A DNA stretch of 64,000 nucleotides, taken from assembly GCA_964188305.1 (NCBI GenBank), contig OZ076893.1. One strand, written 5' to 3'. The DNA comes from Podarcis bocagei (lineage: Eukaryota). Position 1 is the stretch's first letter. Each line of letters starts with the position of its first letter. The position numbers and the translations under genes are program-made. Below, piece by piece: positions 21,365 to 61,715 of this stretch. The notes below the pieces were generated by a model. That model saw nothing but the letters and a program-made list of their open reading frames with translations. It made no database searches and was not told the origin of the DNA.

Positions 21365-21885
21365 CAGTGTTTCCCAATCGGTGTTCCGCGGCACACGAGT
21401 GTGCCGTGAGACGTTGCCTCGTGTGCCGCGAGATGCCTGGAGGGAGGCAGGCGAGTCGGGCGGCGAGAGGCGGGGCGGCGGCGGCGAGGAGAGGCTGCGC
21501 CTCCTGCTGCTGCCTGGCGCTCCTCCTCGCAGCCGGCAGCGCTGCCTGGGCGCCTCCGCGCGACTCTGCCTCGCTGGGTTTGGTCTCCCAGCAGAGACGG
21601 GTCACACGCGCACCTCCCTCCCTCCCTCAGCCTGCGCGGAGGGAGAGCCAGAGAGAGGCATCGCTCCTGCGCGGCGGGAGAGGGAGCAGCCGGAGTGATG
21701 CCCCAAACGAGCTGAATTCCGAGCGAGGGACTGAGGGGGGAGGGAAAAAACTTTCACTTTCGTGCGTCCTCCCGGCGTGACGCTGCGCGCTGACGTCACG
21801 GGGCGGGGCTTTAATGGTGGTGTGCCGCGAGATTTTTTTTCAGTAAACAGGTGTGCCGTTGCCCAAAAAAGTTTGGGAAACACTG
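21365..21885. mobile_element. Non-autonomous hAT-type DNA transposon with GC-rich cargo (521 bp)
   Basis: TIR cagtgtttcccaa / ttgggaaacactg; 8-bp TSD ccctattc at 21357-21364 and 21886-21893. Confidence 0.92.
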
Positions 21886-36840: not shown

Positions 36841-39523
36841 GTAAGGTTTGTTTTCTGAAATTAAATGCCATTATCTATCATTCTTTGCCATTAGTGACAT
36901 TGTCAGAGTGCTTTCTATCCAGCTAATGTGACTGCCTTTTTGTTTTTCATCATATAAATGAAAAGTTTGGCTCTTACATCATTTGGCTTTCATGAATCAG
37001 GATGCGTCCTTTTCCCTCCATGGGGAAGCTACACATTGCAGCTTCGAGCCATGCCCTTGAAACCATCTGGTAGAACTTATCTTGTTGTCATTTGAACAAC
37101 TAGTATTTTGAGGAGTTGACCTTCAACTACTTTCATTAAATTAAATAAAGTGAGGGAAAGAACTTTGCTTTTCACATTACTTGGCTTTGGGGGGGGGGCA
37201 GAAATTTTGGCTGTAGAATCAAAGGAGGGCACCTTACTATATAGCAGAAAATACTGTCACTGTTATTAGTATTACTAGCAATTTTTTAAAGCAATAGATT
37301 TTAAAGATATACGCTTTTGAGAGGTGCCTGTAAATTATGCTTTACTTCCTTCTCCATAAAATCAAATTCATAGGGGTTCAATAAAGGCATGTGTGTTCCT
37401 GCATGAGTGATGTAAAAAAAAAGTCATGTCAAGACTGACTGACTGGCCTTCTAGAGTAGATTGTGGATATTTTCAGCCCCCATATTCCTTTAAGTGAAAC
37501 CACATTGCATTAAAGCTCTTTCTAAACAACTGTCTGAAAGGCGGACAGGCGGACAGATAATGTGGGATATTTTGTTAAAGACATGAATTGTGCATTTATT
37601 TATTTTTAAATTTTATTTAAAACAAAAATAAAACAATTACATACAGCCAGAGAGTTATCTTCAAATACTCCACAGAGCTTTGCTAAAGTGTATATTCTAA
37701 AATCATTTCAATCTCAACAGAAACAAAATGGTACGTAATAACCTCCATCTCTTTGACTGTTGATCACAACTACAAATATATATTGTATCAGCAGCAGTGT
37801 TGGTCTGCAGGAATTATTCAAAGGCAAGAAGGAAGGAGGAAAAATAAAATAAAATATGTGCTTCATGCACGCCAAACTGTGCTGTAGGACAAGGCACCGT
37901 TCTGCCACATTCCTCATTGTTTGTATAATCTATAAAGTCATCCAAGACTGCATAAAAGTTATCATATTTCCCCTGGCCTCTTGCTATCTTCAATTTCCAT
38001 GTCAGTTTTTTCAATAATGCTACCTGCCAGATTGCACTGCCTGCGTCATGTATTTCTGCCTCATGATTTAGACAATAATAATGATAGTTAAATGATATTT
38101 ATATGTTTCAAAGGGCATTGCATATAATGGGTCAGATTCAGAATTAGTTATCCTTGGACCAAGTTAGTCAAGTAAGTCAATTCTATTTAAGTCTGGCTAC
38201 TTGAAGTATGATGAAGTCTGGATTTGACACATTATCTTATAATTCTTATATAAGTGAGTTCTTGTCAGAGGCAAAATTCATACCATAGAATTCCTGGTTC
38301 ACAGTTTTGTTTTTTACATGAGACCAGCTCAATATACATGAAGCAAGTTGAATTCTTGAACTGCTCTACCAACATGTTAGCTATGCTGCTTACATGGCAT
38401 GAATGCATGAATAGATGGATAACTGTATTTCTGATCATAGCATTGTGGGATATCTTAGCAGGTTCTTGAGTTACTTAAGCCTGCAATGAACAACCCCCTC
38501 CAACTCCCTGCTGGGCTCATGGCCAGTAGGGCAGATGTGAGGTTGGAGGAATGTTCTTGCCAGGATTGGTGCTAGCTGTTGGAAGGAATTAGGGGACAGG
38601 ACCATGACTGACAATTGCAGTGTGCTCAGCTACCACGTAAACATAGAAAAAGAAGTTTAAAAATGGAGGGGAAAGCTCAGAACATTTGAGGTTCAGCATA
38701 TAACACCCCAGGGCTAATTTATGTAGTTTTGTTCCTTGATTAAATGTAGTTGCATTAACAGCTGTAGCTTCCTAAAATACTGAAAGGACCGTAGTGATTT
38801 CTGAGTAGCTTTCTGGTTGTCCTGTCCAACCCCCACTCCCCACCGGAAAAATAGGGGTCTCCATATTGTTTGCATATGTAGAGGGGATGACCCATATCTG
38901 TGATATTGTGAAGTAGCTGGGGTGTTGTGTAAGGTCAAAAGCACACACCACAAACTAAATGAAATCAGCAAAGTGTCTATCGTAACTGGACAAATGGGCA
39001 GGTGGGGAAAATGGCAAAGGTAAATACTGACACAGTACATCTGTTGAAGGAGAAAGCTACACAAACAGACCAGAAATCGTGTGGACATAAGGTGACAAAA
39101 TAGGACTTGAGATGTGGCACTATTCTCAGTGAAATTATGTAAAGATAAACACACTTTTCAGACACGTCCTTAGGCTTTCCACACACAGTCTAAGATGCCT
39201 GTAAATACCTAATACAATATTTTTCTAATTTGTTTAAAAGTCTTTTATTATAAATAACAATATCATTCTCATACTTCAGTCTGCTATTCTGATTTTTTTC
39301 TAAAGAAATTGTGGAAATAGTGCTATAAATTCATTACTGCTTTTTCTTTGCTGTAAATATTTACTTGAAGCTGATTCCTTTTAACCCATTTGAATGGTGA
39401 ACAGATAACACTTTCTAACAGGCATATTCACATAACCTGTATGAGAATATGGTCTGAGTCATTACATAAAAATACTACTATGTCATGTCATGAATTAGGA
39501 GAGAAAAATCAGTGGGAAAAGAT

Positions 39524-39564
39524 TGCAGTTCTTGGTTTCAGACTCACAGTGTCACTGTTGGACA
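39524..39564 (+). promoter_or_regulatory. CSE/CTCF site of V7
   Basis: tgcagttcttggtttcagactcacagtGTCACTGTTGGACA. Confidence 0.83.
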
Positions 39565-39783
39565 AGGCGGCAATCCATGAGCAGCTGAAGTTGCACTGAT
39601 GCTTTCTGCAGAGAGATCTCTTTGTCCTAAACTGCACATCGGGAATACCAGCAGACGCTGGAAAAAACGTTTCAGCTGGAAAACAGAAAACACTGCAGCA
39701 TATACAAATTAAGCCAAAGGATCCAGTTCTTTTTTTACTGGGGGAAAATCTGAAATCCTGTGCTCATCAAAGAGAAGAGGAAA

Positions 39784-42213
39784 ATGAAGATGAGAGGAAT
39801 CCTTCATGGAGAGAGCTTTCAAACACCAGGAAGGTATATTACCCTTCTGATATTTTCATCTTTGTTCTGTGGAGCAGTTTTGGAAGAGGTTAACTATTCC
39901 ATCCCTGAGGAGATGGCAAAGGGGTCTTTGGTGGGAAATCTTGCCAAGGATCTAGGACTGAATGTCAGAGAACTGAAGAGCAGAAACCTGCATATCATTT
40001 CTGAAGGTAAAAAGCCATATTTCACTATCAATGCTGAAAATGGAAACCTGTATGTGAATGAGAGGATAGATCGTGAGGGGATGTGTAGAGAGAGCACACA
40101 CTGCATTACTGATTTTGAAGCGATGGTTGAAAAGCCATTGAATGTTTTCCATGTAAGTGTAGCAATTCAGGACATTAATGATAACGCGCCACAATTCTTA
40201 GAAGCCAATATTAGACTGGAAATAATTGAATCCACATTGCCAGGTGCTAGATTTCTCCTTGGGAAAGCTGAAGATCCTGATATTGGGATTAATTCTCTCC
40301 AAAACTACCAGTTAAACCTAAATCAGTTCTTTGTATTAGAAATTAAACACAGTCTAGATGGCCATAAAAATGCAGAGTTGGTGCTGCAAAAACCTTTGGA
40401 TCGGGAAAGTGAGCACTCGCTTCAGTTGATCCTCACAGCTCTTGATGGAGGTGAACCCAAAAAAACTGGGACTGCCCAGATATGGATTAACGTCACAGAT
40501 GCCAATGACAACCCACCAGTCTTCACTCAAGAACTTTATACAGTTAGCCTGAGGGAAAATTCCCCTGTGGGGTCCCCCATACTCCAAGTAAAAGCCTTGG
40601 ATAAGGATGAAGGTTCAAATAGTCAGATCCATTACACATTCAGTAAAGTCCCAGAAAAAGTCTATGAAAAATTTAGACTAGATCCACAAAGTGGAACAAT
40701 TACAATTAAGGAGACCCTTGACTTTGAGGAAACAGAGAAGTACACTATGGCAGTTGAAGCAAGAGATGGAGGTGGATTAGTGGCTCACTGTAATGTTGAT
40801 ATAAAGATTATAGATGAGAATGATAATGCTCCAGAAATTATTCTAGCCTCCTTATCTTCTCCAATTCCCGAAGATTCTGTTTCTGAAACAGTAATAGCTC
40901 TCATCAACGTAAAGGATAGGGATTCGGGAGAAAATGGAAAGATCACCTGCCACTTACAAAGTAATGTACCATTTAAAATAGTCTCAACATCTAAGAACTA
41001 CTACAAAATCCTTACAGACAGTCCTTTGGACAGAGAAAAAGCCTCAGGATACAACATCACAATCACGGCCACCGACAAAGGTAGCCCTCCTCTCTCCTCC
41101 AACAAAACCATCTCCCTGCAGATTTCAGATATCAATGATAACCCCCCTGCCTTTGAAAAATCAACTTACAGTGTCTTTGTGCCTGAAAACAATCCCTCAG
41201 GTGCCTCCATTTTCTCCATCAAAGCCTTGGACCCAGATCTGGACCGTAACTCACGTATCACTTACTCCATCCTCAACAGCAACATGGAGGAGCTGCCTCT
41301 CTCCTCTTACGTCTCCATCAGCTCTGAGACGGGAACTATCTATGCACAGCGCTCCTTTGACTATGAGCAATTCAGGGAGTTTCAGATCCAAGTGAAGGCC
41401 CAAGATGGCGGCTCTCCCTCTCTCAGCAACAACGCCACCGTGTGGGTGTACATTTTGGATCAGAACGATAACAGCCCTCGCGTTCTGTATCCTCTCCCGG
41501 GTGTTGAGGACTCTGCCTTGTTTGAGATGGTTCCTCACTCGGCAGAGCCAGGCTACCTAGTGACCAAAGTGGTGGCTGTGGACGCGGACTCTGGGCACAA
41601 TGTCTGGCTCTCCTACCAAGTGCTGCAGGCCACAGAGCCGGCCCTTTTCACCATTGGGACCCACACGGGAGAGATCAGGACGTCACGAGCCCTTCTGGAG
41701 AAAGATGCTGTGAAACAGAAGCTGGTCATCCTGGTGAAGGACAGTGGGAAGGCTCCGCGCTCAGCTACTGTGGTCCTCAACCTCGTGGTTGCCGAGAACT
41801 TCCAAGAGGCACTTCCAGAAATGACTAGGCAATCCAGTGACACAGAGCATCATTCTGACCTCCAGTTTTACTTGGTGCTGGCTTTGGCATTGATCTCATT
41901 TTTATTCCTCCTGACGGTGATACTGGTCATTGTCATGAAACTTCGACAGTCAGGAAATCCCAAATTATTCCAATGCTTTGAACCTAATGCTTTTTCTAAG
42001 GCACAGGTCATATTTCCACCAAACTATGAAGAAGGAACTTTACCTTATTCCTACCAACTCTGCCTATCGTCAGAGATGAGGAAAGAGCAGGTCTCTTTCC
42101 CGAAACCCCATATCCAGGTGGCAGAAAACTTGCTATGCAATGATAGCTCTCAGGTGGTTCTTGTGGATGGCAACTGTGGGGATGCCAATGCCAAAGAGGA
42201 GGTTGGTGAGCAG
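39784..42213 (+). CDS. PCDHGB: Protocadherin gamma-B-like variable exon V7
   Basis: First ATG 39784 (alternative 39790); tail [16 protein letters not shown]; donor CAG|GTAAGC after 42213 (810 codons). Confidence 0.9.
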
Positions 42214-42408
42214 GTAAGCTTTGCTTTTAGAAACAGCCTTACCTTATCGGAATAAAACTAATATTTTTATTTTGTTTTACTATATAAGGGGGTCAGGAAA
42301 ATGAAATTACAGTGTTAACAGCAATTGTTCTGATTGTGGAGAACTTTCCCTACACATAGAAATGCTAGATGCAGCATAAATTCTGAATCATACAATAATG
42401 TCAGAGTG

Positions 42409-42505
42409 TGTATCTGAAGAAGTGTGCATGCACACGAAAGCTCATACCAAGAACTAACTTAGTTGGTCTTTAAGGTGCTACTGGAAGGAATTTTTTTATT
42501 TTGAG
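42409..42505 (+). mobile_element. 97-bp Penelope-like retroelement terminal fragment
   Basis: 13-bp TSD taatgtcagagtg (42396-42408 and 42506-42518); empty site in the duplicated copy at about 54890-54902. Family call rests on the hammerhead-type head and recalled similarity to reptile PLE ends. Confidence 0.75.
42410..42447 (+). ncRNA. Minimal type-I hammerhead ribozyme motif
   Basis: GUAU-CUGAAGA-A-GUGUGC-AU-GCACAC-GAAA-GC-UC-AUAC: stem I GUAU/AUAC, CUGANGA and GAAA core, hairpin stem II, palindromic AGCU in place of stem III. Confidence 0.65.
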
Positions 42506-42714
42506 TAATGTCAGAGTGAGTCTTCATCTCAGGAATTAAAGGAAATGTAAGCATGCATACAGCTTGAGTGTTCAGTCTTCCTGTGGGGTATTAGCATGTC
42601 ACCATAAATATATAGTTATTTATACACCCCTCATCAATTAAAAATAAGGATCAACTTAACTGAAGAATGCATAAAAAATGAATACTTCCTGTTTATTTGT
42701 AGTATAATTTTGGG

Positions 42715-44097
42715 CTCTATGTGGCTTTTCTGGAGGATTCATAAAAAGAAGTTGTGTGAAATACAGCAAGCACAGAAAAGGCATCCCAAATGATCAATGG
42801 GTGCAACAACTTCTGTAGGGATATTTAGTTTGGATAAAAGACAAGAAGAGAAGTGAGACAGCTGTATAGAATTATGAACGAGGTTGAGAAAATGAATAGA
42901 GAGATCCCCCTCCCCCATATTACTGGAACCTGCAGCCATTAGATGAATCTGAACATTGGGAGATTCAGAACAGATAAAATGAAGTACTTCTTTATACAAT
43001 GCATAGATAAACTATGGAATTCCTTGTTGACAACTAAATGCAACAAAGTAATTGCCAGAGAAGTCTGGGACATCGGATCAGTGAAAATGGATGTGGCAGC
43101 AAACAATTAGTGTGAATCTTAAGAAACACTTGTATACGTTTATTTTTTGATGGTACATGACACTGCTGTGGCTTCGTCACATTTTAGTTGTTGTTGTTTA
43201 TTTGTTTAGTCGCGTCTGACTCGTCGTGACCCCATGGACAGAGCACGCCAGGCACTCCTGTCTTCCACTGCCTCCCACAGTTTGGTCAAATTTATAGTAT
43301 AGCAAATAATTACGTTGGAAGTACAATTCAACCAATGCTAGGATGCAACATATTTGGGAGGCATGTCCCTAAATTAAGAATTTGTGGGTGGATATAATAA
43401 GAGAAAATGAAATAATGACAGGATGCACTTTCCCAATGGATCCTCTCATTGTTTTATCTAGTTGTTTTAAGGATTTAGTATAACAGACGACAGATAATTA
43501 CTCCAACAGTTACTGTCTGTGGCCAGAGCAACTATTTGTTATAACTGAGGGCATTGGCTAAGAACACCAGCTTTAGGGGAATGGATTACTACAGCATGGA
43601 ATATTTTATCAATGGTTCAAATAATTAATACATTAAGAATCAGAGAGAGGAGGCAGTCTGATAACTTTCAATGTGTTTTTCATAATTTTTTGGTGCAATG
43701 AAGTTCAAGATAACGCAGACCCACATACTTTATTCAGATCTTTATGAAGGCTATATACTTTATTTGAGTTCATAATAAAAATTTAAAGATAATTGTATAC
43801 ACAAACATTTGGTTTTTATATAAACCATTATTAAATATTTTACTTATTTAAACAAACAAACAATGGAAATCACTATCACAAGATGCAACGATGGTCACCT
43901 ACTTGGGTGGTTTTAAAGGGGGATTAGAAAAAAATCATTGTCACGTTGGCTATATTATGTCTAGTACCAGACACCTCTGAATGTGGGCCAAGGGCAGAGC
44001 TTTTGAGGGGCAATTGGTTGCCCATAGTGGGAGAAAGGATGCTGGACTCAATAGAGCTCTGGCCTGATCCAGCAGGGCTCTTCTTATGTTTTTATGA
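42715..44097 (+). mobile_element. Fragmented CR1-type LINE 3' region (pieces at about 42715-43030 and 43875-44097; paralogous pieces at about 55150-55385 and 55875-56097)
   Basis: Similar to the 3' part of the element at 3790-4818 (gatgaatctgaacattgggagattcag; ggtggttttaaa; ctggcctgatccagcagggctcttcttatgtttttatg). Confidence 0.6.
43187..43290 (-). mobile_element. RTE/BovB LINE 3'-end fragment
   Basis: Reverse complement reads ...cctggcgtgctctgtccatggggtcacgacgagtcagacgcgactaaac followed by a (CAA)n tail. Confidence 0.8.
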
Positions 44098-44554
44098 AAT
44101 AGAATGGTGTGCAATGTTTCTGTGTGATAGACTAGCACATGAAAAACTAGAAGCATGTTGAAAATTAGGCAGCACTCTGGTTGTGATCACTTGGAAATGT
44201 CAGTTCTGTTCAGTGGGGTTCCAGTTTCAAGGGGATATATGGCAGGCAAAAATATTTGAATAGCATACACATCTCCAGATTGGGTTTATGGTCCTGTAGG
44301 CTGTTCTATGGAGCAATAAGAGGAGCTATCCCCTTTAATGCGTACAAACTGAAAGTAAATTACTTTAGTTATTTTCTAATAAGACCTGTATCATATACTC
44401 TTTCAATTAGACACAACTGATTTCTTCTAACACCTCTTGTCTCTCCACTGTTCTCAGTTCCCAAACTTCATGATGCTATTATCATGATATGAGCTCACGT
44501 GTAAAGTGCCAACCAACATTTCATCCTGTTGGATCATGCCTAGCTTCCGTCAAG

Positions 44555-44715
44555 GTGTTCCGTTTTGCCAAAAGCTGTTTAGTCATGCTGGCCACATGAC
44601 CTGGAAAGCTGTCTGTGGACAAATGCCGGCTCCCTCGGCCTGAAAGAGAGATGAGCGCCGCCACCCCATAGTCGCCTTTGACTGAACTTAACTATCCGGG
44701 GGTCCTTTACCTTTT
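44555..44715 (+). mobile_element. 5'-truncated Sauria SINE
   Basis: ttagtcatgctggccacatgacctggaa...gagatgagcgccgccaccccatagtcg...gtcctttaccttt matches the 3' half of the SINE at 10791-11138. Confidence 0.8.
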
Positions 44716-45391
44716 TTTACTGCTGGTAGAGCAGCTACAGCCATTGGTCCTACACTTGTGCTGAGTTCCTGCTTTGATCACAGGGGAGCAACTGCTAAGC
44801 AAGGACATTTGTATGGCATCAGCAGGTAGGAGGCAGGTGGCAGAGTCTGATGTAGAACCAATACCAGCGAACACACTTTCATTACGTTACTCTTGGAATT
44901 CCTACCCAACACTGAGAAGAACTTGTACTCTGTTCCATAAATGTTGATGAACAGACATCCAACAACTTAGGAGAGATAAAAAAAGAGAATAATTTCAATA
45001 GGGTGTTTATATTCTATTTAAGCAACAACAACAAAAATACAGTTGACTTACAGCTCTTGTGCTACTATAGCGTAACTATTATCGTAATACATTAATTTTA
45101 AGATAAGGTTTTACTATGTAACTGGATATTTATATATTAATAATAATGTTTCCATGTTTCAAAAAAAAATGAAGATGTGTATAACCTTCATGTAATTGCA
45201 GTATTAGATACGACCCCAATTTTCACAGTACTGAAAAGCCACGAACATAAATGAGGGTAGCTGTACACTAAGAAAGAACACCAAGGAAAAGCTTTCTCAA
45301 ATGCTCCACTCAGTGAGCAGAAAGGAAGGTACAGTATGTGCTGGAGAAACACCTGCATTTATTCACCTCTGTCTATTTTCATAGAACAAAA

Positions 45392-46275
45392 TGCAGTTCC
45401 TTGAGTGGTCCTCTAAGTCAGTGTTTCCCAACTGGTGTTCCGCGGCACACTAGTGTGCCGCAAGACGTTGCCTGGTGTGCCGTGGGAGGGAGGCGGGCGA
45501 GTCGGGCGGCGAGAGGCGGGGCGGCAGCGGCGAGGAGAGGCCGCCCAGCGCGGGGCTCTCGCCGTCTGCCTGCCTGGCTGCCTGCGTGGCGCTGACGTCA
45601 CGGGGCTGTAACGTGCCCCACATAGGCACACGCGGGGCGGCGAGCGAGCTCCCTCCCACATCCCATCGCTGCTCGCTTCGGCCGGCCTACTGGGCTGTCG
45701 CAGGCGGAAGGCCTGTGCATGCACGAGGCTTTCGCGCCTTCGGGATTCCCTTCACGCCTTCCTCCTCCCGGGTCCTTGAGAGCGCGGGAAGCGGCAGCGC
45801 GAGACCGGCGTTGAGCCTGGTAGGTATTGCGCTTGCCAAGGCAGTCATTTGGGAAATGAAAACTTGCAAAGCAAGCAACCAGTTCAATCTGAAGTACGTG
45901 TATGCTTAATATCCTGTATCTGAAACCTGTTCTGCCCCCTCCCCCACACTTGGTGCCATTTTCATCTACACATGCAGCAGAGTAAGTTGACCCAGAATAG
46001 TACCAATTCAGATGGCAGATGGGAGAATGACAGTGCTGAATGCTTTCCCATGTAGAACAGTCCCTGCAAATAAAAACCTAGCATATTTGGAAGAGGGATG
46101 CTAGCCTAACCATTACCTTCTATGCTGTTACTATTTTTTATTTTTTTTTACATAAGTAAAAAGTGACCTTTCCCCATCTGGCATGGTGGTGTGCCTCGAG
46201 ATTTTTTTCATGAAACAAGTGTGCCTTTGCCCAAAAAAGGTTGGGAAACACTGCTCTAAGTGTCAGTGTTGGCCA
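45392..46275 (+). promoter_or_regulatory. CSE/CTCF site of V8, split by a hAT-type insertion
   Basis: 5' half tgcagttccttgagtggtcctctaagt (45392-45418) and 3' half ctctaagtgtcagtgttggcca (46254-46275) rejoin to match the intact paralogous element at 57341-57381. Confidence 0.85.
45419..46253. mobile_element. Non-autonomous hAT-type DNA transposon with CpG-rich cargo (835 bp), inserted in the V8 CSE
   Basis: TIR cagtgtttcccaac / gttgggaaacactg; 8-bp TSD ctctaagt (45411-45418 and 46254-46261); empty site at 57360-57367; arms shared with 21365-21885. Confidence 0.95.
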
Positions 46276-46545
46276 GTATGAGAGCCAGAGAGAGGATAGA
46301 CATCCATTGATGCTTCCTAGACTGCAGTAACTCCCATCACTGCTATTCGGATCAGGCCAGCTGAAGAGCACAGTGACGGAACTCGGGCAGAGAAGGAAAA
46401 ATCTCTTTTGCTTTGCACAAATATAAGAACAAGGGCAGTTTATTCTTCCTCAGTGATACCTCGTGTTGTTTCCTTCATCATTGTGAGAGCTTGAGCATAG
46501 GAAACTGAGAAAAGGAAGCAGCCTGTTTTTGAGAGAACCAGCCAA

Positions 46546-48966
46546 ATGGAGAGAAGGCACCCAGGGAATGGCAGGGCACTCACAAGGCAAGTACTGCTTC
46601 TCTCTCTCTTGTCTTTTACCTGTTGGGCTGCATCAGAGCAGATTCATTATTCAACCCCTGAGGAGATGGCAAAGGGTTCCGTTGTGGGGAACCTCGCCAA
46701 GGACCTGGGACTGAGCGCCAGAGAACTAAAACATCGCAATCTGCACACTGTGTCTGTGGCTAAAATGCAGCATTTCAGTATCAATGCAGAGAATGGAAAC
46801 CTCTATGTAAATGACAGGATTGATAGGGAGGGGATATGTGGCAAAAATCCAAATTGCTTTGTTAATTTTGAAGTTGTGGTGGAAAACCCTTTGAATATTT
46901 TCCATGTACTAGTGGAAATCCAGGATGTTAATGATAATGCACCACAATTCCTCAATGGCAACATCAACTTGGAGACAGGAGAACAAACCTTGCCTGGGGC
47001 CCGCTTTCTCCTTGGGAAAGCAGAAGATCCTGACATTGGGATGAACTCTCTCCAGGATTACCAGTTGAGCTCCAATCAGTATTTCTCTTTGGAAGTTAGA
47101 GAAAGGAAGGATGGAAATAAATATGCAGAACTGGTGCTACAGAAACCTCTTGACCGAGAAAGTGAACAGACCCTTCACTTGGTTCTTACTGCTATGGATG
47201 GGGGTGAGCCTAGGAAAACTGGGACGGCCCAGATACAGATTAATGTCACTGATGCCAATGACAACCCACCTGTTTTCACTCAAGAGGTATACAAGGTCAG
47301 CTTATCTGAAAATGTTCCTGTTGGGTCACGTGTTCTCCAGGTTGCAGCCTCTGATAAGGATGAAGGTACAAATGCCCAAATCAGGTATCATTTTAGCAAC
47401 ATACCGGCAACTGCTGAACAGAAATTCAGGCTGGATCCCATCAGTGGTAGAATCACTCTTCTGGAGGAACTGGATTTTGAGGACAATGATGAATATACTA
47501 TGACAGTTGCTGCAAAAGATGGTGGTGGATTGGTGACACATTCTAATATTGAGATAAGGGTTCATGATGAGAATGATAATGCCCCAGATGTGACCTTAGC
47601 CTCCATGTTCAGCCCTGTTCCTGAAAATTCTCTGCCAGGAACAATCATTGCACTGATCAATGTGAATGACAAAGATAGTGGAGATAATGGGAAGGTTACT
47701 TGCTACTTAAACGATAATTTACCCTTCAAAATTCTTCCCTCATCTAACAATTACTTCAAGCTCCAGACCGACAGTCCTCTGGATAGGGAAATAGCTCCTG
47801 CATATAATATTACAATCATAGCCACTGATAGAGGAACTCCACCTCTTTCCACACACAAAACAATCTCACTACAGATCTCAGATATCAATGATAATGCCCC
47901 TGCTTTTCAGAGATCAATCTACAGCATCTACGTGCCAGAAAACAATCCTTCAGGTGCCTCCATTTTCACCATCAAAGCCTCTGATCCCGATGTGGACCAG
48001 AACTCACGGATCACATACTCCATCCTCAACAGCAACATTGAGGAGCTTCCCATCTCCTCCTATATCTCCATTAATTCAGAGACTGGCACCATCTATGCCC
48101 AGAGATCCTTTGACTATGAACAATTCAGAGAGTTCCGGCTGCAAGTGAAGGCCCAAGATAGGGGTTCTCCCCCTCTCAGCAGCAATGTGACCGTCAGAGT
48201 GTTTGTTCTTGACAGGAATGATAACAGCCCTCGTATCCTGTCCCCCTCACAAGAAGCCAAGGGCTCAGCCTTGTTTGAGATGGTGCCTCGTTCGGCCGAG
48301 GCAGATTATCTTGTCACCAAGGTGGTGGCCGTGGATGCAGATTCTGGACACAACGCCTGGCTCTCCTACCACCTGACTCAGGCCACTGAGCCGGCACTCT
48401 TCACGGTTGGTTCTCATACTGGAGAGATCAGGATGGCCAGGGCCTTTGTGGAGAGAGACGCTGTGAAACAGAGACTGGTCATTCTGGTGAAGGATAACGG
48501 GCAGCCGTCTCTCTCGGCCACCATGACTCTGAACCTGGTGTTTGCTGAGAACTTTCAGGAGGCCCTTCCGGAAATGAAGAGCCAACCCAGCAGCTCGGAG
48601 TATCAGTCTGACCTGCAGTTCTACTTGGTGCTGGCCTTAGCTGTGATCTCTTTCTTGTTCCTCTTGACTGTCATTCTGGCCGTTACAATGAAGCTCCGTC
48701 AATCAGGGCATCCCAGGTTCCTACAGTGCTTTGGTCCTGTTCCCCATTCCAAGAATGGTGCCATCTTCCCACCCAACTTTGAAGATGGGACTTTGCCCTA
48801 TTCCTACCAGCTGTGTCTGTCTTCTGAGACCAGGAAAAATGAGTTTGCCTTCCTGACACCCAATGTTCAGATGGCAGACAATATTCTTAGTGGTGAGAAA
48901 CCTGCTGTGCCTTTTACAGGCAATGTAGGAAACAATTTTGATTCTGCAGTAGATAATGGAGAACAG
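46546..48966 (+). CDS. PCDHGB: Protocadherin gamma-B-like variable exon V8 (hybrid: V10-like 5' part, V6-like 3' end)
   Basis: Intact ORF; donor CAG|GTAAGG after 48966 (807 codons). N-terminus almost identical to V10; the C-terminal [24 protein letters not shown] is identical to V6. Confidence 0.92.
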
Positions 48967-50651
48967 GTAAGGTTTGTTTTCTGCAATTGAATGCCATTAT
49001 CTATCATTCTTTGCCATTAGTGACATTGTCAGAGTGCTTTTTATCCAGCTAATGTGACTGCCTTTTTGTTTTTCATCATATAAATGAATAGTTTGGCTCT
49101 TACATCATTTGGCTTTCATGAATCAGGATGCGTCCTTTTCACTCCATGGGGAAGCTACACATTGCAGCTTTGAGCCATGCCCTTGAAACCATCTGGTAGA
49201 ACTTATCTTGTTGTCATTTGAACAACTAGTATTTTGAGGAGTTGACCTTCAACTACTTTTATTAAATTAAATAAAGTGAGGGAAAGAACTTTGTTTTTCA
49301 CATTACTTGGCTTGGGGGGGCAGAAATTTTGGCTGTAGAATCAAAGGAGGGCACCTTGCTATATAGCGGAAAATACTGTCACTGTTATTAGTATTACTAG
49401 CATTTTTTTTAAGCAATAGATTTTAAAGACATATACTTTTGAGAGGTGTCTGTAAATTATGCTTTACTTCCTTCTCCATAAAATCAAATTAATTATAAAT
49501 TTGTTAATTTATACTGTGTGAGTTTTCAGTTTAATGAACTGCAGCTACCATGAACTTCAGTAGATTGTTTGAATCTAAGTTATGAGTGTGAATTATGCTG
49601 TTTATATAATTTCACTTAGAAATTATACAATGAATTGCTGCCTACAATTCATATTAAACATCATTGTATAAAGTATTTATACATAGTTCAGATCTAGAGC
49701 TTCCCTGTTTCATTCAATGAAGAGGAAAGTTCCAGAAACATCTGATTGAATTGCCTTATCAAACTAATGACATCCAAATTAGTTTAGTCCACACATTTTT
49801 CTAACTTTAATACTGGAATTCAGTATTAAAATTCAGAGTGTGGAGATTTAAAGCCTTGCTACATCTAGATACCAGTATTCCATTTAAATAGTCCACAATG
49901 CACATGTTCTATGTAGATTAGAAACCTAAGGAACCTAGAGTGGGTGGAACATGGCATAAAAGGATGCTTAGCTTCATAGTGTCCTTACTACCTTGGGTGG
50001 ATCTGGAAAGGAGAACTAATTATCTCATACCTAAGATTTACCAGCTCCTGGTGTTTAAATGTCCTCCTCTACACAAAATTGAGTGAAGAGCAAATACCAG
50101 TTTCAGTACTGATCCCAATCTTAAGTCCAGATTGGGGTCACCAATTAAATGTGACCTGCAAGGAAGGCCTTCAACTTGGTAGAAATCAGATCAGACTTGT
50201 AAATAAATGAGTCGATTGTGGATATTTCCAGCCCCTATATTCCTTTAAGTGAAACCACATTGCATCAAAGCTCTTTCTACACAACTGTCTGAGAGACAGA
50301 CAGGCGGACAGATAATGTGGAATATTTTCTTAAATACATGCGTTGTGCATTTATTTATTTTTAAATTTTATTTAAAACAAAAATAAAACAACTACATACA
50401 GCCAGAGAGTTATCTTCAAATACTCCACAGAGCTTTGCTAAAGTGTATATTCTAAAATCATTTCAATCTTAACAAAAACAAACTGGTACGTAATAACCTC
50501 CATCTCTTTGACTGTTGATCACAACTACAAATATATATTGTATCAGCAGCAGTGTTGGTCTGCAGGGATTATACAAAGGCAAGAAGGAAGCAGGAAAAAT
50601 AAAATAAAATATGTGCTTCATGCACACCAAACTGTGCTGTAGGCCAAGGCA

Positions 50652-50741
50652 CATAGCTGTCAACGTTGCCATTTTTTCAAGGGAAATTCCCTTATTCCGA
50701 ATAGGATTCCTCGCAAGCAAAGGGAAAAGTTGACAGCTATG
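50652..50741. mobile_element. 90-bp hAT-type MITE
   Basis: 13-bp perfect TIR catagctgtcaac / gttgacagctatg; 8-bp TSD ccaaggca; empty site at about 37889-37896 in the other duplicate copy. Confidence 0.9.
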
Positions 50742-51996
50742 CCAAGGCACTGTTCTGCCACATGCCTCATTGTTTGTATAATCTATAAAGTCATCCAAGA
50801 CTGCATAAAAGTAATCATATTTCCCCTGGCCTCTTGTTTCTTCAATTTCCATGTCAGTTTTTTCAATAATGCTACCTGCCTGCGTCATGTATTTCTGCCT
50901 CATGATTTAGACAATAATAATGATACTGTGTATATGATATTTATAAGTTTCAAAGGACATTGCATATAATGGGTCAGATTCAGAATTAGTTATCCTTGGA
51001 TCAATTAGTCAAACAAGACTAATTTAAGTCAAATTTGTTTAAGTGGGGCTACTCTAAGTATGATGGAGTCTGGATTTGACACATTACCTTAGAATTCTTA
51101 TATAAGTGAGTTCCTGTCAGAGGCAAAATTCATACCATGGAATTCCTGGAAAGCTCAGAACATTTGAGGTCCAGCATACCCAGGGCTTATGTATGCAGTT
51201 TTGTTCCTTGATTAAATGAAGTTGCATTGACAGTTGGAGACCACATGTAACTTTCTAAAATACTGAAAGGACTGTAGAGATTTCTGAGTAGAATTCTGGT
51301 TGTCCTATCCCATCCCCCGGCAAAATAGGGGTCTCCATATTATTTGCATATGTAGAGAGGATGAACCATATCCGTGATATTGTGAAGTACCTGGGGTGTT
51401 GTATAAGGTCAAAAGCACACACCACCAAGTAAATGAAATCAGCAAAGTGTCTATCATAACTGGACAAATGGGCAGGTGGGGAAAATGGCAAAGGTAAATA
51501 CTGACACAGTACAACTGTTGAAGGAGAAAGCTACACAAACAGACCAGAAATCATGTGGGCATAAGGTGATAAATTAGGACTTGAGATGTGGCACTATTTT
51601 CAGTGAAATTATGTAAAGATAAAGACAATTTTCAGACACGGTTTTAGGCTTTCCACACACAGTCTAAGATGCCTGTAAATACCTAATACAATATTTTTCT
51701 AATTTGTTTAAAAGTGTTTTATTATAATCAACGATAGCATTCTCATACTGCAGTCTGCTATTCTGATTTTTCCTAAAGAAATAGTGGAAATAGTGCTATA
51801 AATTCATTACTGCTTTTTCTTTGCTGCAAATATTAATTTGAAGCTGATTCCTTTTAACCTATTGTAATGGTGAACAGATAACACTTTCCAACAGGCATAT
51901 TCAGAAAACCTGTATGAGAATATGGTCTGAGTCATTACTTTAAAATACTACTATGTCATGTCATGAATTGGGGAAGAAAAATCACTGGGGAAAGAT

Positions 51997-52037
51997 TGCA
52001 GTTCTCTGCTTCAGACTCACAGTGTCACTGTTGGACA
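51997..52037 (+). promoter_or_regulatory. CSE/CTCF site of V9
   Basis: tgcagttctctgcttcagactcacagtGTCACTGTTGGACA. Confidence 0.83.
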
Positions 52038-52270
52038 AGGCGGCAATCCATGGGCAGCTGAAGTTCCACTGATGCTTTCTGCAGAGAGATCTCTTTGTCC
52101 CAAACTGCACATCGGGAATACCAGCAGACGCGGGAACAAACGTTTCAGCTGGAAAACAGAAAACACTGCAGCACATAAAAGCCAAAGGATCCAGTTCTTT
52201 TTTTACTGAGGGGAAATCTCCTGTCTTGGTGGAAATCTGAAATCCTGTGCTCATCAAAGAGAAGAGGAAA

Positions 52271-54700
52271 ATGAAGATGAGAGGAATCCTGCCTGGAAAG
52301 AGCTTTCAAACAGCAGGAAGGTATATAACACTTCTGATATTATCATCTTTGTTTTCTGGAGCAGTTTTGGAAGAGGTTAACTATTCCATTCCTGAGGAGA
52401 TGGCAAAGGGGTCTTTGGTGGGAAATCTTGCCAAGGATCTAGGACTGAATGCCAGAGAACTGAAGAGCAGAAACCTGCATATCCTTTCTGAAGGTAAAAA
52501 GCCATATTTCACTATCAATGCTGAAAATGGAAACCTATATGTGAATGAGAGGATAGATCGTGAGGGGATGTGTAGAGAGAGCACACACTGCCTTATTGAT
52601 TTTGAAGCTGTGGTCGAAAATCCATTGAACGTTTTCCATGTTAGTCTAGCAATCCAAGACATTAATGATAATGCGCCACAATTCTTAGAAGCCGATATTA
52701 AACTTGAAATAATTGAATCCACATTGCCGGGTGCCAGATTTCTCCTTGGGAAAGCTGAAGATCCTGATATTGGGATTAATACTCTCCAGAATTATCAGTT
52801 AAGCCTAAATCAGTTCTTTATATTAGAAATTAAGCATAGTCTGGATGGCCATAAATATGCAGAATTGGCGCTGCAGAAACCTTTGGATCGGGAGAGTGAG
52901 CACTCCCTTCAGTTGATCCTTACGGCCCTGGATGGGGGTGAACCCAGAAAAACTGGGACTGCCCAGATATGGATTAATGTCACAGATGCCAATGACAACC
53001 CACCAGTCTTCACTCAAGAAGTTTATACAGTTAGTCTAAGGGAAAATTCCCCTGTGGGGTCCCCCATACTCCAAGTAAAAGCCTCTGATAAGGATGAAGG
53101 TTCAAATAGTCAGATCAGTTACACATTCAGTAAAGTCCCAGAAAAAGTCTATGAGAAATTTAGACTAGATCCACAAAGTGGAACAATTACAATTAAGGAG
53201 ACCCTTGACTTTGAGGAAACTGAAAAATACACTATGACAGTTGAAGCAAGAGATGGAGGAGGATTAGTGGCTCACTGTAATGTTGATATAAAGATTATAG
53301 ATGAGAATGACAATGCTCCAGAGATCATCGTGGCCTCCTTATCCACCCCAGTATCAGAAAACTCTGTTTCTGGAACAATAATTGCTCTCATCAATGTAAA
53401 GGATAGAGATTCTGGAGAAAATGGAAAAATTACATGCCATCTACAAAGTAATGTACCATTTAAAATAGCATCTATATCGAAGAACAACTATAAAATCCAC
53501 ACAGACAGTCCATTGGACAGAGAAAAAGCCTCAGGATACAACATCACAATCACGGCCACCGACAAAGGTAGCCCCCCTCTCTCCTCCAACAAAACCATCT
53601 CCCTGCAGATTTCAGACATCAATGACAACCCCCCTGCCTTTGAAAAATCAACCCACAGTGTCTTTGTGCCTGAAAACAATCCCTCAGGTGCCTCCATTTT
53701 CTCCATCAAAGCCTCGGACCCGGATCTGGACCGCAACTCACGTATCACTTACTCCATCCTCAACAGCAACATGGAGGAGCTGCCTCTCTCCTCTTACGTC
53801 TCCATCAACTCTGAGACGGGAACTATCTATGCACAGCGCTCCTTTGACTATGAGCAATTCAGGGAGTTTCAGATCCAAGTGAAGGTCCAAGATGGCGGCT
53901 CTCCCTCTCTCAGCAACAACGCCACCGTGTGGGTGTTCATTTTGGATCAGAACGATAACAGCCCTCGCGTTCTGTATCCTGTCCCAGGTGTTGAGGACTC
54001 TGCCTTGTTTGAGATGGTTCCTCACTCGGCAGAGCCAGGCTACCTAGTGACCAAAGTGGTGGCTGTGGACGCTGACTCTGGGCACAATGCCTGGCTCTCC
54101 TACCAAGTGCTGCAGGCCACAGAGCCGGCCCTCTTCACCATTGGGACCCACACGGGAGAGATCAGGACGTCACGAGCCCTTCTGGAGAAAGATGCTGTGA
54201 AACAGAAGCTGGTCATCTTGGTGAAGGACAATGGGAAGGCTCCACTCTCAGCTACTGTGGTCCTCAACCTCGTGGTTGCCGAGAACTTCCAAGAGGCACT
54301 TCCGGAAATGACTAGGCAATCCAGTGACACAGAACATCATTCTGACCTCCAGTTTTACTTGGTGCTGGCTTTGGCATTGATCTCATTTTTGTTCCTCCTA
54401 ACGGTGATTCTGGTCATTGTCATGAAACTTCGACAATCAGGAAATCCCAAATTATTCCAATGCTTTGAACCTAATGCTTTTTCTAAGGCGCAGGTCATAT
54501 TTCCGCCAAACTATGAAGAAGGAACTTTACCTTATTCCTACCAACTCTGCCTATCGTCAGAGATGAGGAAAGAGCAGATCTCTTTCCTGAAATCCCATAT
54601 CCAGGTGGCAGAAAACTTGCTATGCAATGATATCTCTCAGGTGGTTCTTGTGGATGGCAACTATGGGGATGCCAGTGCGAAAGAGGAGGTTGGTGAGCAG
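52271..54700 (+). CDS. PCDHGB: Protocadherin gamma-B-like variable exon V9 (recent paralogue of V7)
   Basis: First ATG 52271; donor CAG|GTAAGT after 54700 (810 codons). Confidence 0.9.
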
Positions 54701-56514
54701 GTAAGTTTTGTTTCAGAAACAGCCTTACCTTATAGGAATAAAACTAATATTTTTATTTCATTTTACTATATAAAGGGGTCAGCAAAATCAAATTACAGTA
54801 TTAGCAGCAGTTCTGATAGTGAAGAACTTTTCCTACAAGTAGCTTTTAAGTTGCAATGCTAGACGCAGCATAAATTCTGAGGCATACAATAATGGCAGAG
54901 TGAGTCTTCATCTCAGGAATTAAAGGAAATGTAAGCATGCATGCAGCTTGAGGGTTCAATCTTCCTGTGGGGTATTAGCATGTCACCATAAATATATAGT
55001 TATTTATACATCCCTCATCAATTAAAAATAAGGATTTGTACTTTTTCACTCACACAAAGCACAGTTTATTTGCCCTGTTATGATCAACTTAACTGCAGAA
55101 TGCATAAAACATGAATGCTTCCTGTTTCTTTGTAGTATAATTTGGGGCTGTATGTGGCTTTTCTGGAGGATTCATAAAAAGAAGTTGTGTGAAATAACAG
55201 CAAGCACAGAAAAAGGCATCCCAAATGATCCATGGGTGCAACAACTTCTGTAGGGATATTTAGTTTAGATAAAATAAATTACAAGAAGGGAAGTGAGACA
55301 GCTGTATAGAATTATGAACGAGGTTGAGAAAATGAATAGAGAGATCCCTCTCCCCCATATTACCGGAGCCTGTGGCCATTGGGTGAAGATAAGGGAAACT
55401 GAAAGAATAAGAGGATGCACTTTGCCAATGGATCCTCTCATTGTCTTATATGATTACTTTAAGGATTTAGAACAACAGAAGTCAGATAATTACTCCAACA
55501 GCTACTGTCTGTGGCCAGAGCAACTATTTGTTATAATTGTGGGCAGGGGGCAGGGCTAAAAACACTAACTTTAGTGGAATGGATTACTACAGCATGGAAT
55601 ATTTTATCAATTGTTCAAGTAATTAATACAGTAAAAATCAGAGAGGGGAGGCAGTCTGATAACTTTCTGTGTGTTTTTTCATAATTTATTGGTGCAATGA
55701 AGTTCAAGATAACCCAGACCCACATACTTTATTTGGATGTTTATGAAGGCTATATGCTTTATTTGATTTCATAATAGGAATTTAATGATAATTGTATGCC
55801 TAGCCATTTTGTTTTTATATAAACCATTTCTAAATAATTTACTTATTTAAACAAACAAACAATGGAAATCACTATCACAAGGTGCACCGATGGTCACCTG
55901 CTTGGGTGGTTTTAAAGGGGGATTAGAAAAAAATCATTGTCACATTGGCTATATTATGTCTAGTACCAGACACCTCTGAATGTGGACCAAGGGCAGAGCT
56001 TTTGAGGGGCAATTGGTTGGCCACAGTGGGAGAAAGGATGCTGGACTCAATAGAGCTCTGGCCTGATCCAGCAGGGCTCTTCTTATGTTTTTATGAAATA
56101 GAATGGTGTGCAATGTTTCTGTGTGATAGACTAGCAGATGAAAAACTAGAAGCATGTTGAAAATTAGGCAGCACTCTGGTTGTGATCACTTGGAAATGTC
56201 AGTTCTGTTCAGTGGGGTTCCAGGATACACATCTCCAGATTGGGTTTATGGTCTTGTAGGCAGTTCTATGGAGCAATAAGAGGAGCTATTACCTTTAATG
56301 CGTACAAACTGAAAGTAAATTACTTTAGTTATTTTCTAATAAGACCTCTATCATATACTCTTTCAATTAGACACAACTGATTTCTTCTAACACCTCTTGT
56401 CTCTCCCCTGTTCTCAGTTCCCAAACTTCATGATGCTATTATCATGATATTAGCTCACACGTAAAGTGCCAACAAACATTTTATCCTGTTGGATCATGCC
56501 TAGCTTCCGTCAAG

Positions 56515-56675
56515 GTGTTCCGTTTTGCCAAAAGCTGTTTAGTCATGCTGGCCACATGACCTGGAAAGCTGTCTGTGGACAAATGCCGGCTCCCTCGGCC
56601 TGGAATAGAGATGAGCGCTGCCACCCCATAGTCGCCTTTGACTGAACTTAACTATCCGGGGGTCCTTTACCTTTT
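56515..56675 (+). mobile_element. 5'-truncated Sauria SINE (duplicated copy of 44555-44715)
   Basis: Same sequence and flanks as 44555-44715. Confidence 0.8.
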
Positions 56676-57340
56676 TTTACTGCTGGTAGAGCAGCTACAG
56701 CCATTGGTCCTACACTTGTGCTGAGTTCCTGCTTTGATCACAGGGGAGCAACTGCTAAGCAAGGACATTTGTATGGCACCAGCAGGTAGGAGGCAGGTGG
56801 CAGAGTCTGATGTAGAACCAATACCAGCGAACACACTTTCATTACGTTACTCTTGGAATTCCTACCCAACACTGAGAAGAACTTGTGCTGTGTTCCATAA
56901 ATGTTGATGAACAGACATCCAACAACTTAGGAGAGATAAAAAAAGAGAATATTTTCAATAGGGTGTTTATATTACTTCTATTCAAGAAAAAAATACAGTA
57001 GACTTACAGCTCTTGTTCTACTACAGCATAACTATTATCGTAATACGTTAATTTTAAGAAATATGTTTTAATATGTAACTGGATATTTATATATTAATAA
57101 TAATGTTTACAATAAAAAAGAAGATGTGAATAACCTTCATGTAATTGCAGTATCAGATATGAACCCAATTTTCACAGTACTGAAAAGCCACGAACATAAA
57201 TGAGGGTAGCTGTACACTAAGAAAGAACACCAAGGAAAAGCTTTCTCAAATGCTCCACTCAGTGAGCAGAAAGGAAGGTACAGTATGTGCTGGAGAAATA
57301 TCTGCATTTATTCACCTCTGTCTATTTTCATAGAACACTA

Positions 57341-57381
57341 TGCAGTTCCTTGAGTAGTCCTCTAAGTGTCAGTGTTGGCCA
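57341..57381 (+). promoter_or_regulatory. CSE/CTCF site of V10
   Basis: tgcagttccttgagtagtcctctaagtGTCAGTGTTGGCCA (CAGT variant). Confidence 0.8.
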
Positions 57382-57652
57382 GTATGAGAGCCAGAGAGAG
57401 GATAGAGATCCAGTGATGCTTCCTAGACTGCAGTAACTCCCATCACTGTTATTCAGATCAAGCCAGCTGAAGAGCACAGAGACAGGGAACTCTTGCAGAG
57501 AAGGAAAAATCTCTTTTGCTTTGCACAAATATAAGAATAAGGCAGTTTATTCTTCCTCAGTGATACCTCATGTTGTTTCCTTCATCACTGTGAGAGCTTG
57601 AGCATAGGAAACTGAGAAAAGGAAGCAGCCTGTTTTTGAGAGAACCAGCCAG

Positions 57653-60073
57653 ATGGAGAGAAGGCACCCAGGGAATGGCAGGGCACTCACAAGGCAAGTA
57701 CTGCTTCTCTCTCTATTGTCTTTTACCTGTTGGGCTGCATCAGAGCAGATTCATTATTCAACCCCTGAGGAGATGGCAAAGGGTTCCGTTGTGGGGAACC
57801 TCGCCAAGGACCTGGGACTGAGCGCCAGAGAACTAAAACATCGCAATCTGCACACTGTGTCTGTGGCTAAAATGCAGCATTTCAGTATCAATGCAGAGAA
57901 TGGAAACCTCTATGTAAATGACAGGATTGATAGGGAGGGGATATGTGGCAAAAATCCACATTGCTTTGTTAATTTTGAAGTTGTGGTAGAAAACCCTTTG
58001 AATATTTTTCACGTACTAGTGGAAATCCAGGATGTTAATGATAATGCACCACAATTCCTGAATAGCAATATCAATTTAGAGATCCTTGAATCCACTCTGC
58101 TGGGCACACAATTTCTCCTTGGGAAAGCAGAAGATCCTGACATTGGGATGAACTCTCTCCAGGATTACCAGCTGAGCTCCAATCAGTACTTCACTTTGGA
58201 AGTTAGAGAGAGAAAAGATGGAAATAAATATGCAGAACTGGTGCTGCAGAAACCTCTTGACCGAGAAAGTGAACAGACCCTTCACTTGGTTCTTACCGCT
58301 ATGGATGGGGGTGAGCCTAGGAAAACTGGGACTGTTCATATATGGATTAATGTCACTGATGCCAATGACAACCCGCCTGTTTTCACTCAAGTGGTGTACA
58401 AGGTCAGTTTATCTGAAAATGTTCCTGTTGGGTCACTTGTTCTCCAGGTTGCAGCCTCTGATAAGGATGAAGGTTTATATGCCCAAATCAGGTATCATTT
58501 TAGTAACATACCAGCAACTGCCGAACGGAAATTCAAGCTGGATCCCATCAGTGGCTCAATCACCCTCTTGGAGCAACTGGATTTTGAGGACAACGATGAA
58601 TATACAATGACAGTTGCTGCAAAAGATGGAGGTGGCTTGATGACACATTCTAACATTGAGCTAAGGGTTCATGATGAGAATGATAATGCCCCAGATGTGA
58701 CCTTAGCCTCCATGTTCAGCCCTGTTCCTGAAGATTCTCTGCCAGGGACAGTTATTGCTCTGATCAATGTAAATGACAGAGATAGTGGAGATAATGGGAA
58801 GGTTACTTGCTATTTACAGGATGATTTACCCTTCAAAGTTCTTCCCTCATCAAGCAATTACTTCAAGCTCCAGACAGACAGTCCTTTGGATAGAGAAATA
58901 GCGCCTGCATATAATATTACAATCACAGCCACTGATAGAGGAACTCCACCTCTTTCCACACACAAAACGATCCCACTACAGATCTCAGATGTCAATGATA
59001 ATACCCCTACATTTCAGAAACCATCCTACAACATCTATGTGCCAGAAAACAATCCTTCAGGTGCCTCCATTTTCACCATCAAAGCCTCTGATCCCGATAT
59101 GGACCAGAACTCACAGATCACATACTCCATCCTCAACAGCAACATCGAGGAGCTTCCCATCTCCTCCTATATCTCCATTAATTCAGAGACTGGCACCATC
59201 TATGCCCAGAGATCCTTTGACTATGAACAATTCAGAGAGTTTCGGCTGCAAGTGAAGGCCCAAGATGGGGGTTCTCCCCCTCTCAGCAGCAATGTGACCG
59301 TCAGGGTGTTTGTTCTTGACAGGAATGATAACAGCCCTCGTATCCTGTCCCCCTCACAAGAAGCCAAGGGCTCAGCCTTGTTTGAGATGGTGCCTCGTTC
59401 GGCCGAGGCAGATTATCTTGTCACCAAGGTGGTGGCCGTGGATGCAGATTCTGGACACAATGCCTGGCTCTCCTACCACCTGACTCAGGCCACTGAGCCA
59501 GCACTCTTCACGATTGGTTCTCATACTGGAGAGATCAGGACCGCCAGGGCCTTTGTGGAGAGAGACGCTGTGAAACAGAGACTGGTCATTATGGTGAAGG
59601 ATAACGGGCAGCCGTCTCTCTCGGCCACCATGACTCTGAACCTGGTGTTTGCTGAGAACTTTCAGGAGGCCCTTCCGGAAATGAAGAGCCAACCCAGCAG
59701 CTCGGAGTATCAGTCTGACCTGCAGTTCTACTTGGTCCTGGCCTTAGCTGTGATCTCCTCCTTGTTCCTCTTGACTGTCATTCTGGCCGTTACAGTGAAG
59801 CTCCGTCAATCAGGGCATCCCAGGTTCCTACAGTGCTTTGGTCCTGTTCCCCATTCCAAGAATGGTGCCATCTTCCCACCCAACTTTGAAGATGGGACTT
59901 TGCCCTATTCCTACCAGCTGTGTCTGTCTTCTGAGACCAGGAAGAATGAGTTTGCCTTCCTGACACCCAGTGCTCAGATGGTAGACAATATTATTGGCAG
60001 TGAGAAACCTGTTGTGCCTTTTACAGGCAACAGTGGAGACAATTTTCATTCTGAAATGGCTAATGGTGAAGAG
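57653..60073 (+). CDS. PCDHGB: Protocadherin gamma-B-like variable exon V10
   Basis: Intact ORF; donor GAG|GTAAGA after 60073 (807 codons). Confidence 0.92.
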
Positions 60074-61540: not shown

Positions 61541-61715
61541 NNNNNNNNNNNNNNNNNNNNNNNNNNNNNNNNNNNNNNNNNNNNNNNNNNNNNNNNNNNN
61601 NNNNNNNNNNNNNNNNNNNNNNNNNNNNNNNNNNNNNNNNNNNNNNNNNNNNNNNNNNNNNNNNNNNNNNNNNNNNNNNNNNNNNNNNNNNNNNNNNNNN
61701 NNNNNNNNNNNNNNN
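61541..61715. other. Assembly gap (175 N)
   Basis: Run of N. Confidence 1.

Follow-up and report, generated by a model that had tools for sequence, protein, structure and literature searches.

What happens to a protocadherin gene when a transposon settles inside the conserved promoter block that precedes it? In protocadherin clusters the start codon of each variable exon is preceded, at a fixed distance of about 200 bp, by a conserved element, the CSE (PMC7811963, PMC4978886), and mammalian CSEs are CTCF sites, whose CGCT box is contacted by ZF3 (PMC7811963). Here we analyze a 64,000-bp stretch of the Podarcis bocagei genome (GenBank assembly GCA_964188305.1, contig OZ076893.1), hereafter the window, which carries ten tandem protocadherin variable exons of 814-871 codons each on the + strand, and in which the promoter block of one of them, V8, is cut by a hAT-type element.

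The V8 gene (ORF 46546-48990, 814 codons) and its paralogue V10 (57653-60211) share the Pfam architecture Cadherin_2, five Cadherin domains and Cadherin_C_2, and their best protein matches are lacertid protocadherin gamma-B proteins at 90-96% identity, the top one coming from Podarcis lilfordi (96%). A gamma-b variable exon is ~2.4 kb long, encodes six cadherin repeats between a signal peptide and a transmembrane segment with a short tail, and ends in a splice donor; the Pfam domains, the protein matches and the donor agree with this description, the donor of V8 being an intact CAG/GTAAGG at 48966/48967. The gamma-b subgroup is known to have expanded in lizards (PMC2764143); the same paper, devoted to the Anolis protocadherin cluster, contains nothing on promoters or the CSE. 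V7-V8 and V9-V10 represent a two-gene tandem duplication (37454-49067 vs 50209-60178) that P. lilfordi has as well. The assemblies of P. raffonei and Lacerta agilis hold only one V8/V10-type gene, placed between V7-like genes, which reflects either a change of copy number or an assembly collapse. In the protein tree the close partner of V1 is a protein of P. raffonei, and a run of 175 N, a gap or a masked stretch, occupies 61541-61715.

Each of the ten variable exons has, 211-287 bp before its start codon, a conserved block consisting of TGCAGTTCT, a variable spacer of ~10 bp and a 22-bp core, CTCAGAGTGTC[A/G]CTGTTGGCCA, and the block of V8 is the only interrupted one among the ten (Table 1). 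The upstream module is kept as TGCAGTTCT/C in eight of the ten window promoters and in all lacertid orthologues; its V8 version resembles the published CTCF upstream motif (PMC12885311). The spacer differs among the paralogues and is identical in V8, P. raffonei and L. agilis. The insertion point of the element coincides exactly with the 5' border of the 22-bp core, and the two copies of its TSD stand 843 bp apart, start to start. Because of this duplication a complete core still adjoins V8. A preliminary description of the locus, made from the sequence, had the TSD rebuilding most of the core; the retention is real, and it extends to the whole 22 bp, with only the four bases 5' of the core changed, these being now the transposon end. 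The rest of that anatomy (an 835-bp element, its TSD, the 843-bp displacement and the cut through the V8 promoter block) holds in coordinates and numbers. The insertion has also placed 381 bp of CpG-rich sequence at 430-810 bp 5' of the V8 core.

Table 1. Features of the interrupted V8 promoter, the inserted element and the loci compared with them (positions in the window).
Feature	Position	Strand	Remark
Upstream module TGCAGTTCC of the V8 block	45392..45400	+	displaced from the core by 843 bp
Gene-specific 10-bp spacer TTGAGTGGTC (SSE-like)	45401..45410	+	displaced together with the module
TSD CTCTAAGT, left copy	45411..45418	+	single copy at all empty sites
835-bp non-autonomous hAT (Buster/Charlie-type) element	45419..46253	+	perfect 14-bp TIRs, no coding-like ORF, high-copy family
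CpG-island-like part of the V8 element	45440..45820	+	72% GC, 48 CpG, observed/expected 0.97
572-bp internal segment, missing from the commonest family form	45611..46182	+	joint 45610->46183 in public runs
TSD CTCTAAGT, right copy	46254..46261	+	
22-bp CSE core CTCTAAGTGTCAGTGTTGGCCA, beside V8	46254..46275	+	identical to V10, Podarcis and Lacerta orthologues
V8 variable exon, coding part, protocadherin gamma-b type	46546..48966	+	open, donor intact
Sister copy, hAT family of the V8 element, 521 bp, TSD CCCTATTC	21365..21885	+	two of the five TIR-pattern matches bound it
Uninterrupted 41-bp V10 promoter block, paralogous empty site	57341..57381	+	

The element is bounded by the TIR CAGTGTTTCCCAAC at 45419-45432 and 46240-46253, complementary at 14 of 14 positions. 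A hAT-type TIR starts with YARNG, a rule with which CAGTGTTTCCCAAC, beginning CAGTG, agrees. TA stands at positions 4-5 of both TSDs available in the window, CTCTAAGT and CCCTATTC, a modest support from two sites for nnnTAnnn, the target consensus of Buster-group hATs as opposed to nTnnnnAn for Ac (PMC3517528). The hAT-type identity proposed earlier is thus borne out by the 8-bp TSD, the CAGTG TIR and the nnnTAnnn target sites of both copies. Within the 835 bp we found no transposase remnant or coding capacity, and no ORF with coding character. The element has the same orientation as the protocadherin cluster, and its CpG-rich part, in a window whose overall CpG observed/expected ratio is 0.27 (vs 0.97 in 45440-45820), includes a cAMP-response-like TGACGTCA at 45593-45600 and terminates on the sense strand at a donor-like CTG/GTAGGT (45819/45820). 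The first 210 bp of the 572-bp internal segment extend the GC-rich, exon-like part up to this donor-like site.

We compared the locus with orthologous regions of three annotated lacertid genomes (P. lilfordi, P. raffonei and L. agilis), reached via their proteins. P. lilfordi has the same V7-V8-V9-V10 order, and its V8 orthologue (96.2% identical) and V10 orthologue are both uninterrupted, with one CTCTAAGT each; the single V8/V10-type genes of P. raffonei (95.3%) and L. agilis (93.1%) likewise have an uninterrupted block. Together with the precise empty site of V10, which upholds the earlier choice of this gene as the uninterrupted counterpart, five empty sites with a single CTCTAAGT are available, namely V10, the two P. 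lilfordi genes, P. raffonei and L. agilis, and no TIR was found in the loci of the three other lacertids. Since the block is uninterrupted in V10 and in all three genomes, the insertion at V8 is derived and lineage-specific. When the flanks of the element are joined, ~44 bp including the spacer are identical between V8, P. raffonei and L. agilis in surrounding DNA that differs by 5-7%; overall, V8 differs from its orthologues by 4-7%. The interrupted block is thus strongly constrained and otherwise almost invariant.

How old is the insertion, and to what family does it belong? A search of the window with the TIR pattern, allowing up to two mismatches, returned five matches against 0.67 expected. 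The sister copy lies ~440 bp upstream of the V4 promoter block; it shares the 5' 126 bp and the 3' 71 bp with the V8 copy at 87-90% identity and has an unlike interior. For abundance and age, reads and contigs of the public runs X1, X15, X19 and X23 were compared with the window. In these runs words of the element reach depths of 1e4-1e5 (summed, up to 1e5 at the ends) vs 20-200 in the unique flanks, and therefore the family is very abundant. Its commonest form lacks 45611-46182, as shown by the joint 45610->46183 (depth 969 in X1; 73 reads with 55 starts in X23); the common short form measures ~260 bp, and longer variants also occur. The 572-bp interior is itself multi-copy in the reads, with other copies at least 99% identical to that of V8, and contigs of other copies differ from the V8 copy at five sites and one gap in ~640 bp. 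Every read and contig differs from the window at 45723 and 45729, and 14 of 16 X23 reads differ at 45716, where two match; at two of these three sites a CpG of the family has become TpG/CpA in the V8 copy. Given the ~99% identity to other copies and CpGs that are nearly undecayed, the V8 insertion is young, and methylation-driven decay has probably begun in it.

Further observations concern the family and the neighbouring repeats. An 18-bp stretch with TGACGTCA is common to both copies (45589-45606 and 21787-21804) and in the reads falls just inside the 3' subterminal region of the common short form, and has the look of a conserved family feature, not of cargo. A contig of run X15 has the joint 46258->45418, which leads from the 3' end of an element to a 5' end across the 8-bp spacer CTCTATAT, also of the nnnTAnnn type; it represents either two tandem copies sharing one target site or another end-to-end form. 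Neither the window nor the orthologous lacertid loci showed an autonomous hAT partner. Upstream of V8, the segments 44552-44735 and 44000-44183 reach a summed depth of up to 8.8e5 in the public runs, above that of the hAT element, and are presumably very abundant repeats of another family.

The age of the insertion determines what the V8 and V10 coding sequences can tell. The two promoters had been called nearly identical apart from the insertion; V10 is indeed the uninterrupted counterpart, and the identity of the genes is lower than that wording implies, with 93.5% over the exon and 91.9% over 2 kb upstream (43397-45425), rising to 95-97% only within ~500 bp of the insertion site. Synonymous divergence is 0.128 overall and mosaic along the gene (46546-48966 vs 57653-60073), with 0.015 in codons 1-100, 0.44 in codons 101-200 and 0.03-0.05 in codons 501-700, and 21 V8/V10 differences are concentrated inside 46954-47053; this pattern suggests gene-conversion tracts. 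We also considered relaxed constraint on V8 and rejected it, as the protein branches are equally long (0.042 for V8 vs 0.046 for V10) and dN/dS is 0.28, although such a test cannot be informative here, the V8/V10 duplication being far older than the insertion. For the same reason the open ORF of V8, to which the preliminary description had pointed, carries no weight, intact as its 814 codons and donor are.

Is the interrupted block a CTCF site? The CTCF upstream motif resembles CAGCTGTTCC and is bound by ZF9-11 (PMC12885311, PMC9004084); it usually stands 5-6 bp from the 19-bp core (PMC9004084), is present in only 13-15% of CTCF sites genome-wide, and its mutation lowers binding 3-fold (PMC12885311). 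The lizard block fits this two-part geometry, with the module, ~5 bp, a 19-bp core and C[G/A]CT at core positions 15-18. The box reads CGCT in V3, V4 and V5, CACT in V1, V2, V6, V7 and V9, and CAGT in V8 and V10, the last form being found in the V8/V10-type genes of all species examined. We scored the cores with a CTCF core matrix whose scores serve as a lead only (maximum 28.7 bits; the top 0.01% of the window scores at least 8.2). With this matrix the cores score from -3.4 to 8.9 bits (V1 8.9, V5 8.6, V10 5.6, the rest at most 1.2), so that only V1 and V5 reach the top 0.01%, and V8 falls to -1.1 against 5.6 in V10 because the C at core position 4 has been replaced. CTCF binding at the V8/V10 block is thus plausible, and since the intact core matches weakly and lacks the CGCT box, its dependence on CTCF would be an extrapolation from mammals. 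A CTCF site brought in by the insert was also sought with this matrix and rejected, the best score in the element being a weak 6.5 at 45528. The sister copy has a match of 12.4 bits to the same matrix at 21495 on the minus strand, among the best of the window and absent from the V8 copy.

Combining these observations, we propose that a Buster/Charlie-type non-autonomous hAT of a recently active lacertid family moved by cut-and-paste into the V8 gamma-b promoter after the lineage of the window had split from the compared Podarcis species, and inserted itself at the 5' border of the 22-bp CSE core. Owing to the TSD, the core remained as it was, and so did all that follows downstream, from the start site and 5' UTR to the exon and donor; the module and the gene-specific spacer were pushed 843 bp off, and the transposon end took the place of the four bases 5' of the core. 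The block is expected to act as a single unit of two parts, which in mammals are a CTCF site and the adjacent specific element, and its splitting would leave V8 with weaker or no CSE-dependent activation and choice, on a coding sequence that would so far have had too little time to decay. As the block presumably works as such a unit, the insertion probably, though by no means surely, weakens or abolishes the normal activation of V8. Mammalian promoters of this kind also require the gene-specific element that directly precedes the CSE. In reporters of human PCDHA6, moving the specific element 5, 10 or 15 bp away from the CSE reduces activity to the promoter-less level (PMC3333863), and on these data V8 is predicted to be impaired.

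It is less likely, if still worth serious attention, that the insertion is real and functionally near-neutral, the 22-bp core and the downstream promoter being sufficient for V8 to be chosen much as before. The core, 5' UTR, ORF and donor of V8 are all intact, its protein shows no excess change, and the upstream motif is rare among CTCF sites (PMC12885311). Transcripts bear on the matter as well. The public runs come from related organisms that differ from the window by 0.5-3.5% in unique DNA; X1, X15 and X19 are RNA-like, with exon depth above intergenic depth, and X23 is stranded RNA, in which the V8-type exon is covered in the sense direction from ~46392. V8-type contigs and reads are present in V8-diagnostic stretches, including bins of 7% divergence, and the depth of the V8-type exon is of the same order as that of the V10-type exon in these relatives; an estimate of V8 vs V10 expression from the depth per bin against divergence gave a trend towards lower depth where only V8-type reads can match, which is not significant (rho -0.43, p 0.13) and was discarded. 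Such transcripts would favour near-neutrality, but the runs may be from animals without the insertion. Against it stand also the displaced 19 bp of module and spacer, whose invariance across lacertid genera argues that they matter, and the human promoter that is abolished by short spacers at the equivalent place (PMC3333863).

An improbable alternative is that V8 has gained a promoter or first exon from the element, with transcripts that start in the CpG-island-like part and either run or are spliced into V8, or are spliced straight to the constant exons without a V part. Its base composition and CpG ratio, the good donor-like site at 45819/45820, its orientation along the cluster and the TGACGTCA it carries would all suit such a role. 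Yet none of the 16-17 X23 reads (13 + 3-4) has the letters of this copy at 45716, 45723 and 45729 together, the two that match the window doing so at 45716 alone; element reads fall on both strands and derive from other copies, the joints listed for the public runs include none from 45820, and no ATG-initiated frame passes through the 45820 donor. The two CpG-decay changes even hint that the V8 copy is methylated in the germ line. Least likely of all, and very improbable, is that the insertion stems from an error of assembly, or that the sequenced animal carries it as a rare allele and the species as such does not have it. No contig of the public runs bridges either V8 junction, and of those that reach 46254 from the right, that of X19 stops there and those of X1 and X15 run into non-TIR sequence. 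These contigs at first resembled an empty V8 allele, a reading that we dropped, for they carry 10 of 16 V10 states, and V8 and V10 are 95-99% alike around the site, so that V10-type genes pass the 95% filter and the contigs fit either gene; the non-TIR contigs probably belong to V10-type genes, and the animals of the runs, given their divergence, are probably not the one sequenced. An artefact is also hard to reconcile with a perfect TSD and TIRs at the exact position of the empty sites, the signature of true transposition.

In kind, an insertion of a transposon in a promoter is a fairly ordinary event. There is a slim chance of something more unusual, either that a two-part CTCF-type site of a stochastically chosen gene has been split naturally, perhaps still segregating, with one isoform lost or re-weighted, or that the interior with its CpG island and donor has become a new first exon of a V-less transcript. 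Should V8 be silenced or re-weighted in carriers, the locus would offer a clean natural allele showing that the module and spacer are needed in vivo outside mammals, and would show that active transposons can alter the set of neuronal isoforms gene by gene. The paralogue V10 and the empty sites of the Podarcis and Lacerta orthologues are ready controls. If the insertion has no effect, it would be one more young transposon insertion near a gene. Our literature search found no published case of a transposable-element insertion in a Pcdh promoter.

Comparison with known systems places the element and the block it splits. Like other Buster/Charlie non-autonomous hATs (MITE-like ones such as Drosophila Mar, and the vertebrate Charlie-type), the family has an 8-bp nnnTAnnn TSD, a short CAGTG TIR, no transposase and many copies in a common short form with longer variants; unlike them, the V8 copy has an extra 572-bp internal segment. 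The mammalian protocadherin promoter is reportedly built on an SSE-CSE unit bound by CTCF (Golan-Mashiach 2012; Guo 2012; Monahan 2012). The lizard block resembles this unit in its position 210-290 bp upstream of the start codon, its 22-bp core with a CGCT or CACT box, the gene-specific conserved stretch before the core and an orientation that follows the genes; it differs in the weak agreement of the lizard gamma-b cores with the canonical CTCF core and in the CAGT of the V8/V10 type. Transposable elements are known to create and destroy CTCF sites and loops, for example SINE B2 in rodents (PMC7156512), and the V8 insertion is similar in that a candidate site for an architectural protein has been altered, in one lineage, by a mobile element. 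Unlike cases of the SINE B2 type, the V8 element brings no site of its own and splits one that was already there, conserved and in a promoter of a gene family subject to stochastic choice. The CpG-island, first-exon-like interior of the element, ending in a donor-like site, is finally reminiscent of Pack-MULE and Pack-TIR-like transposons; this interior is itself multi-copy and thus defines a subfamily, and is no one-off capture.
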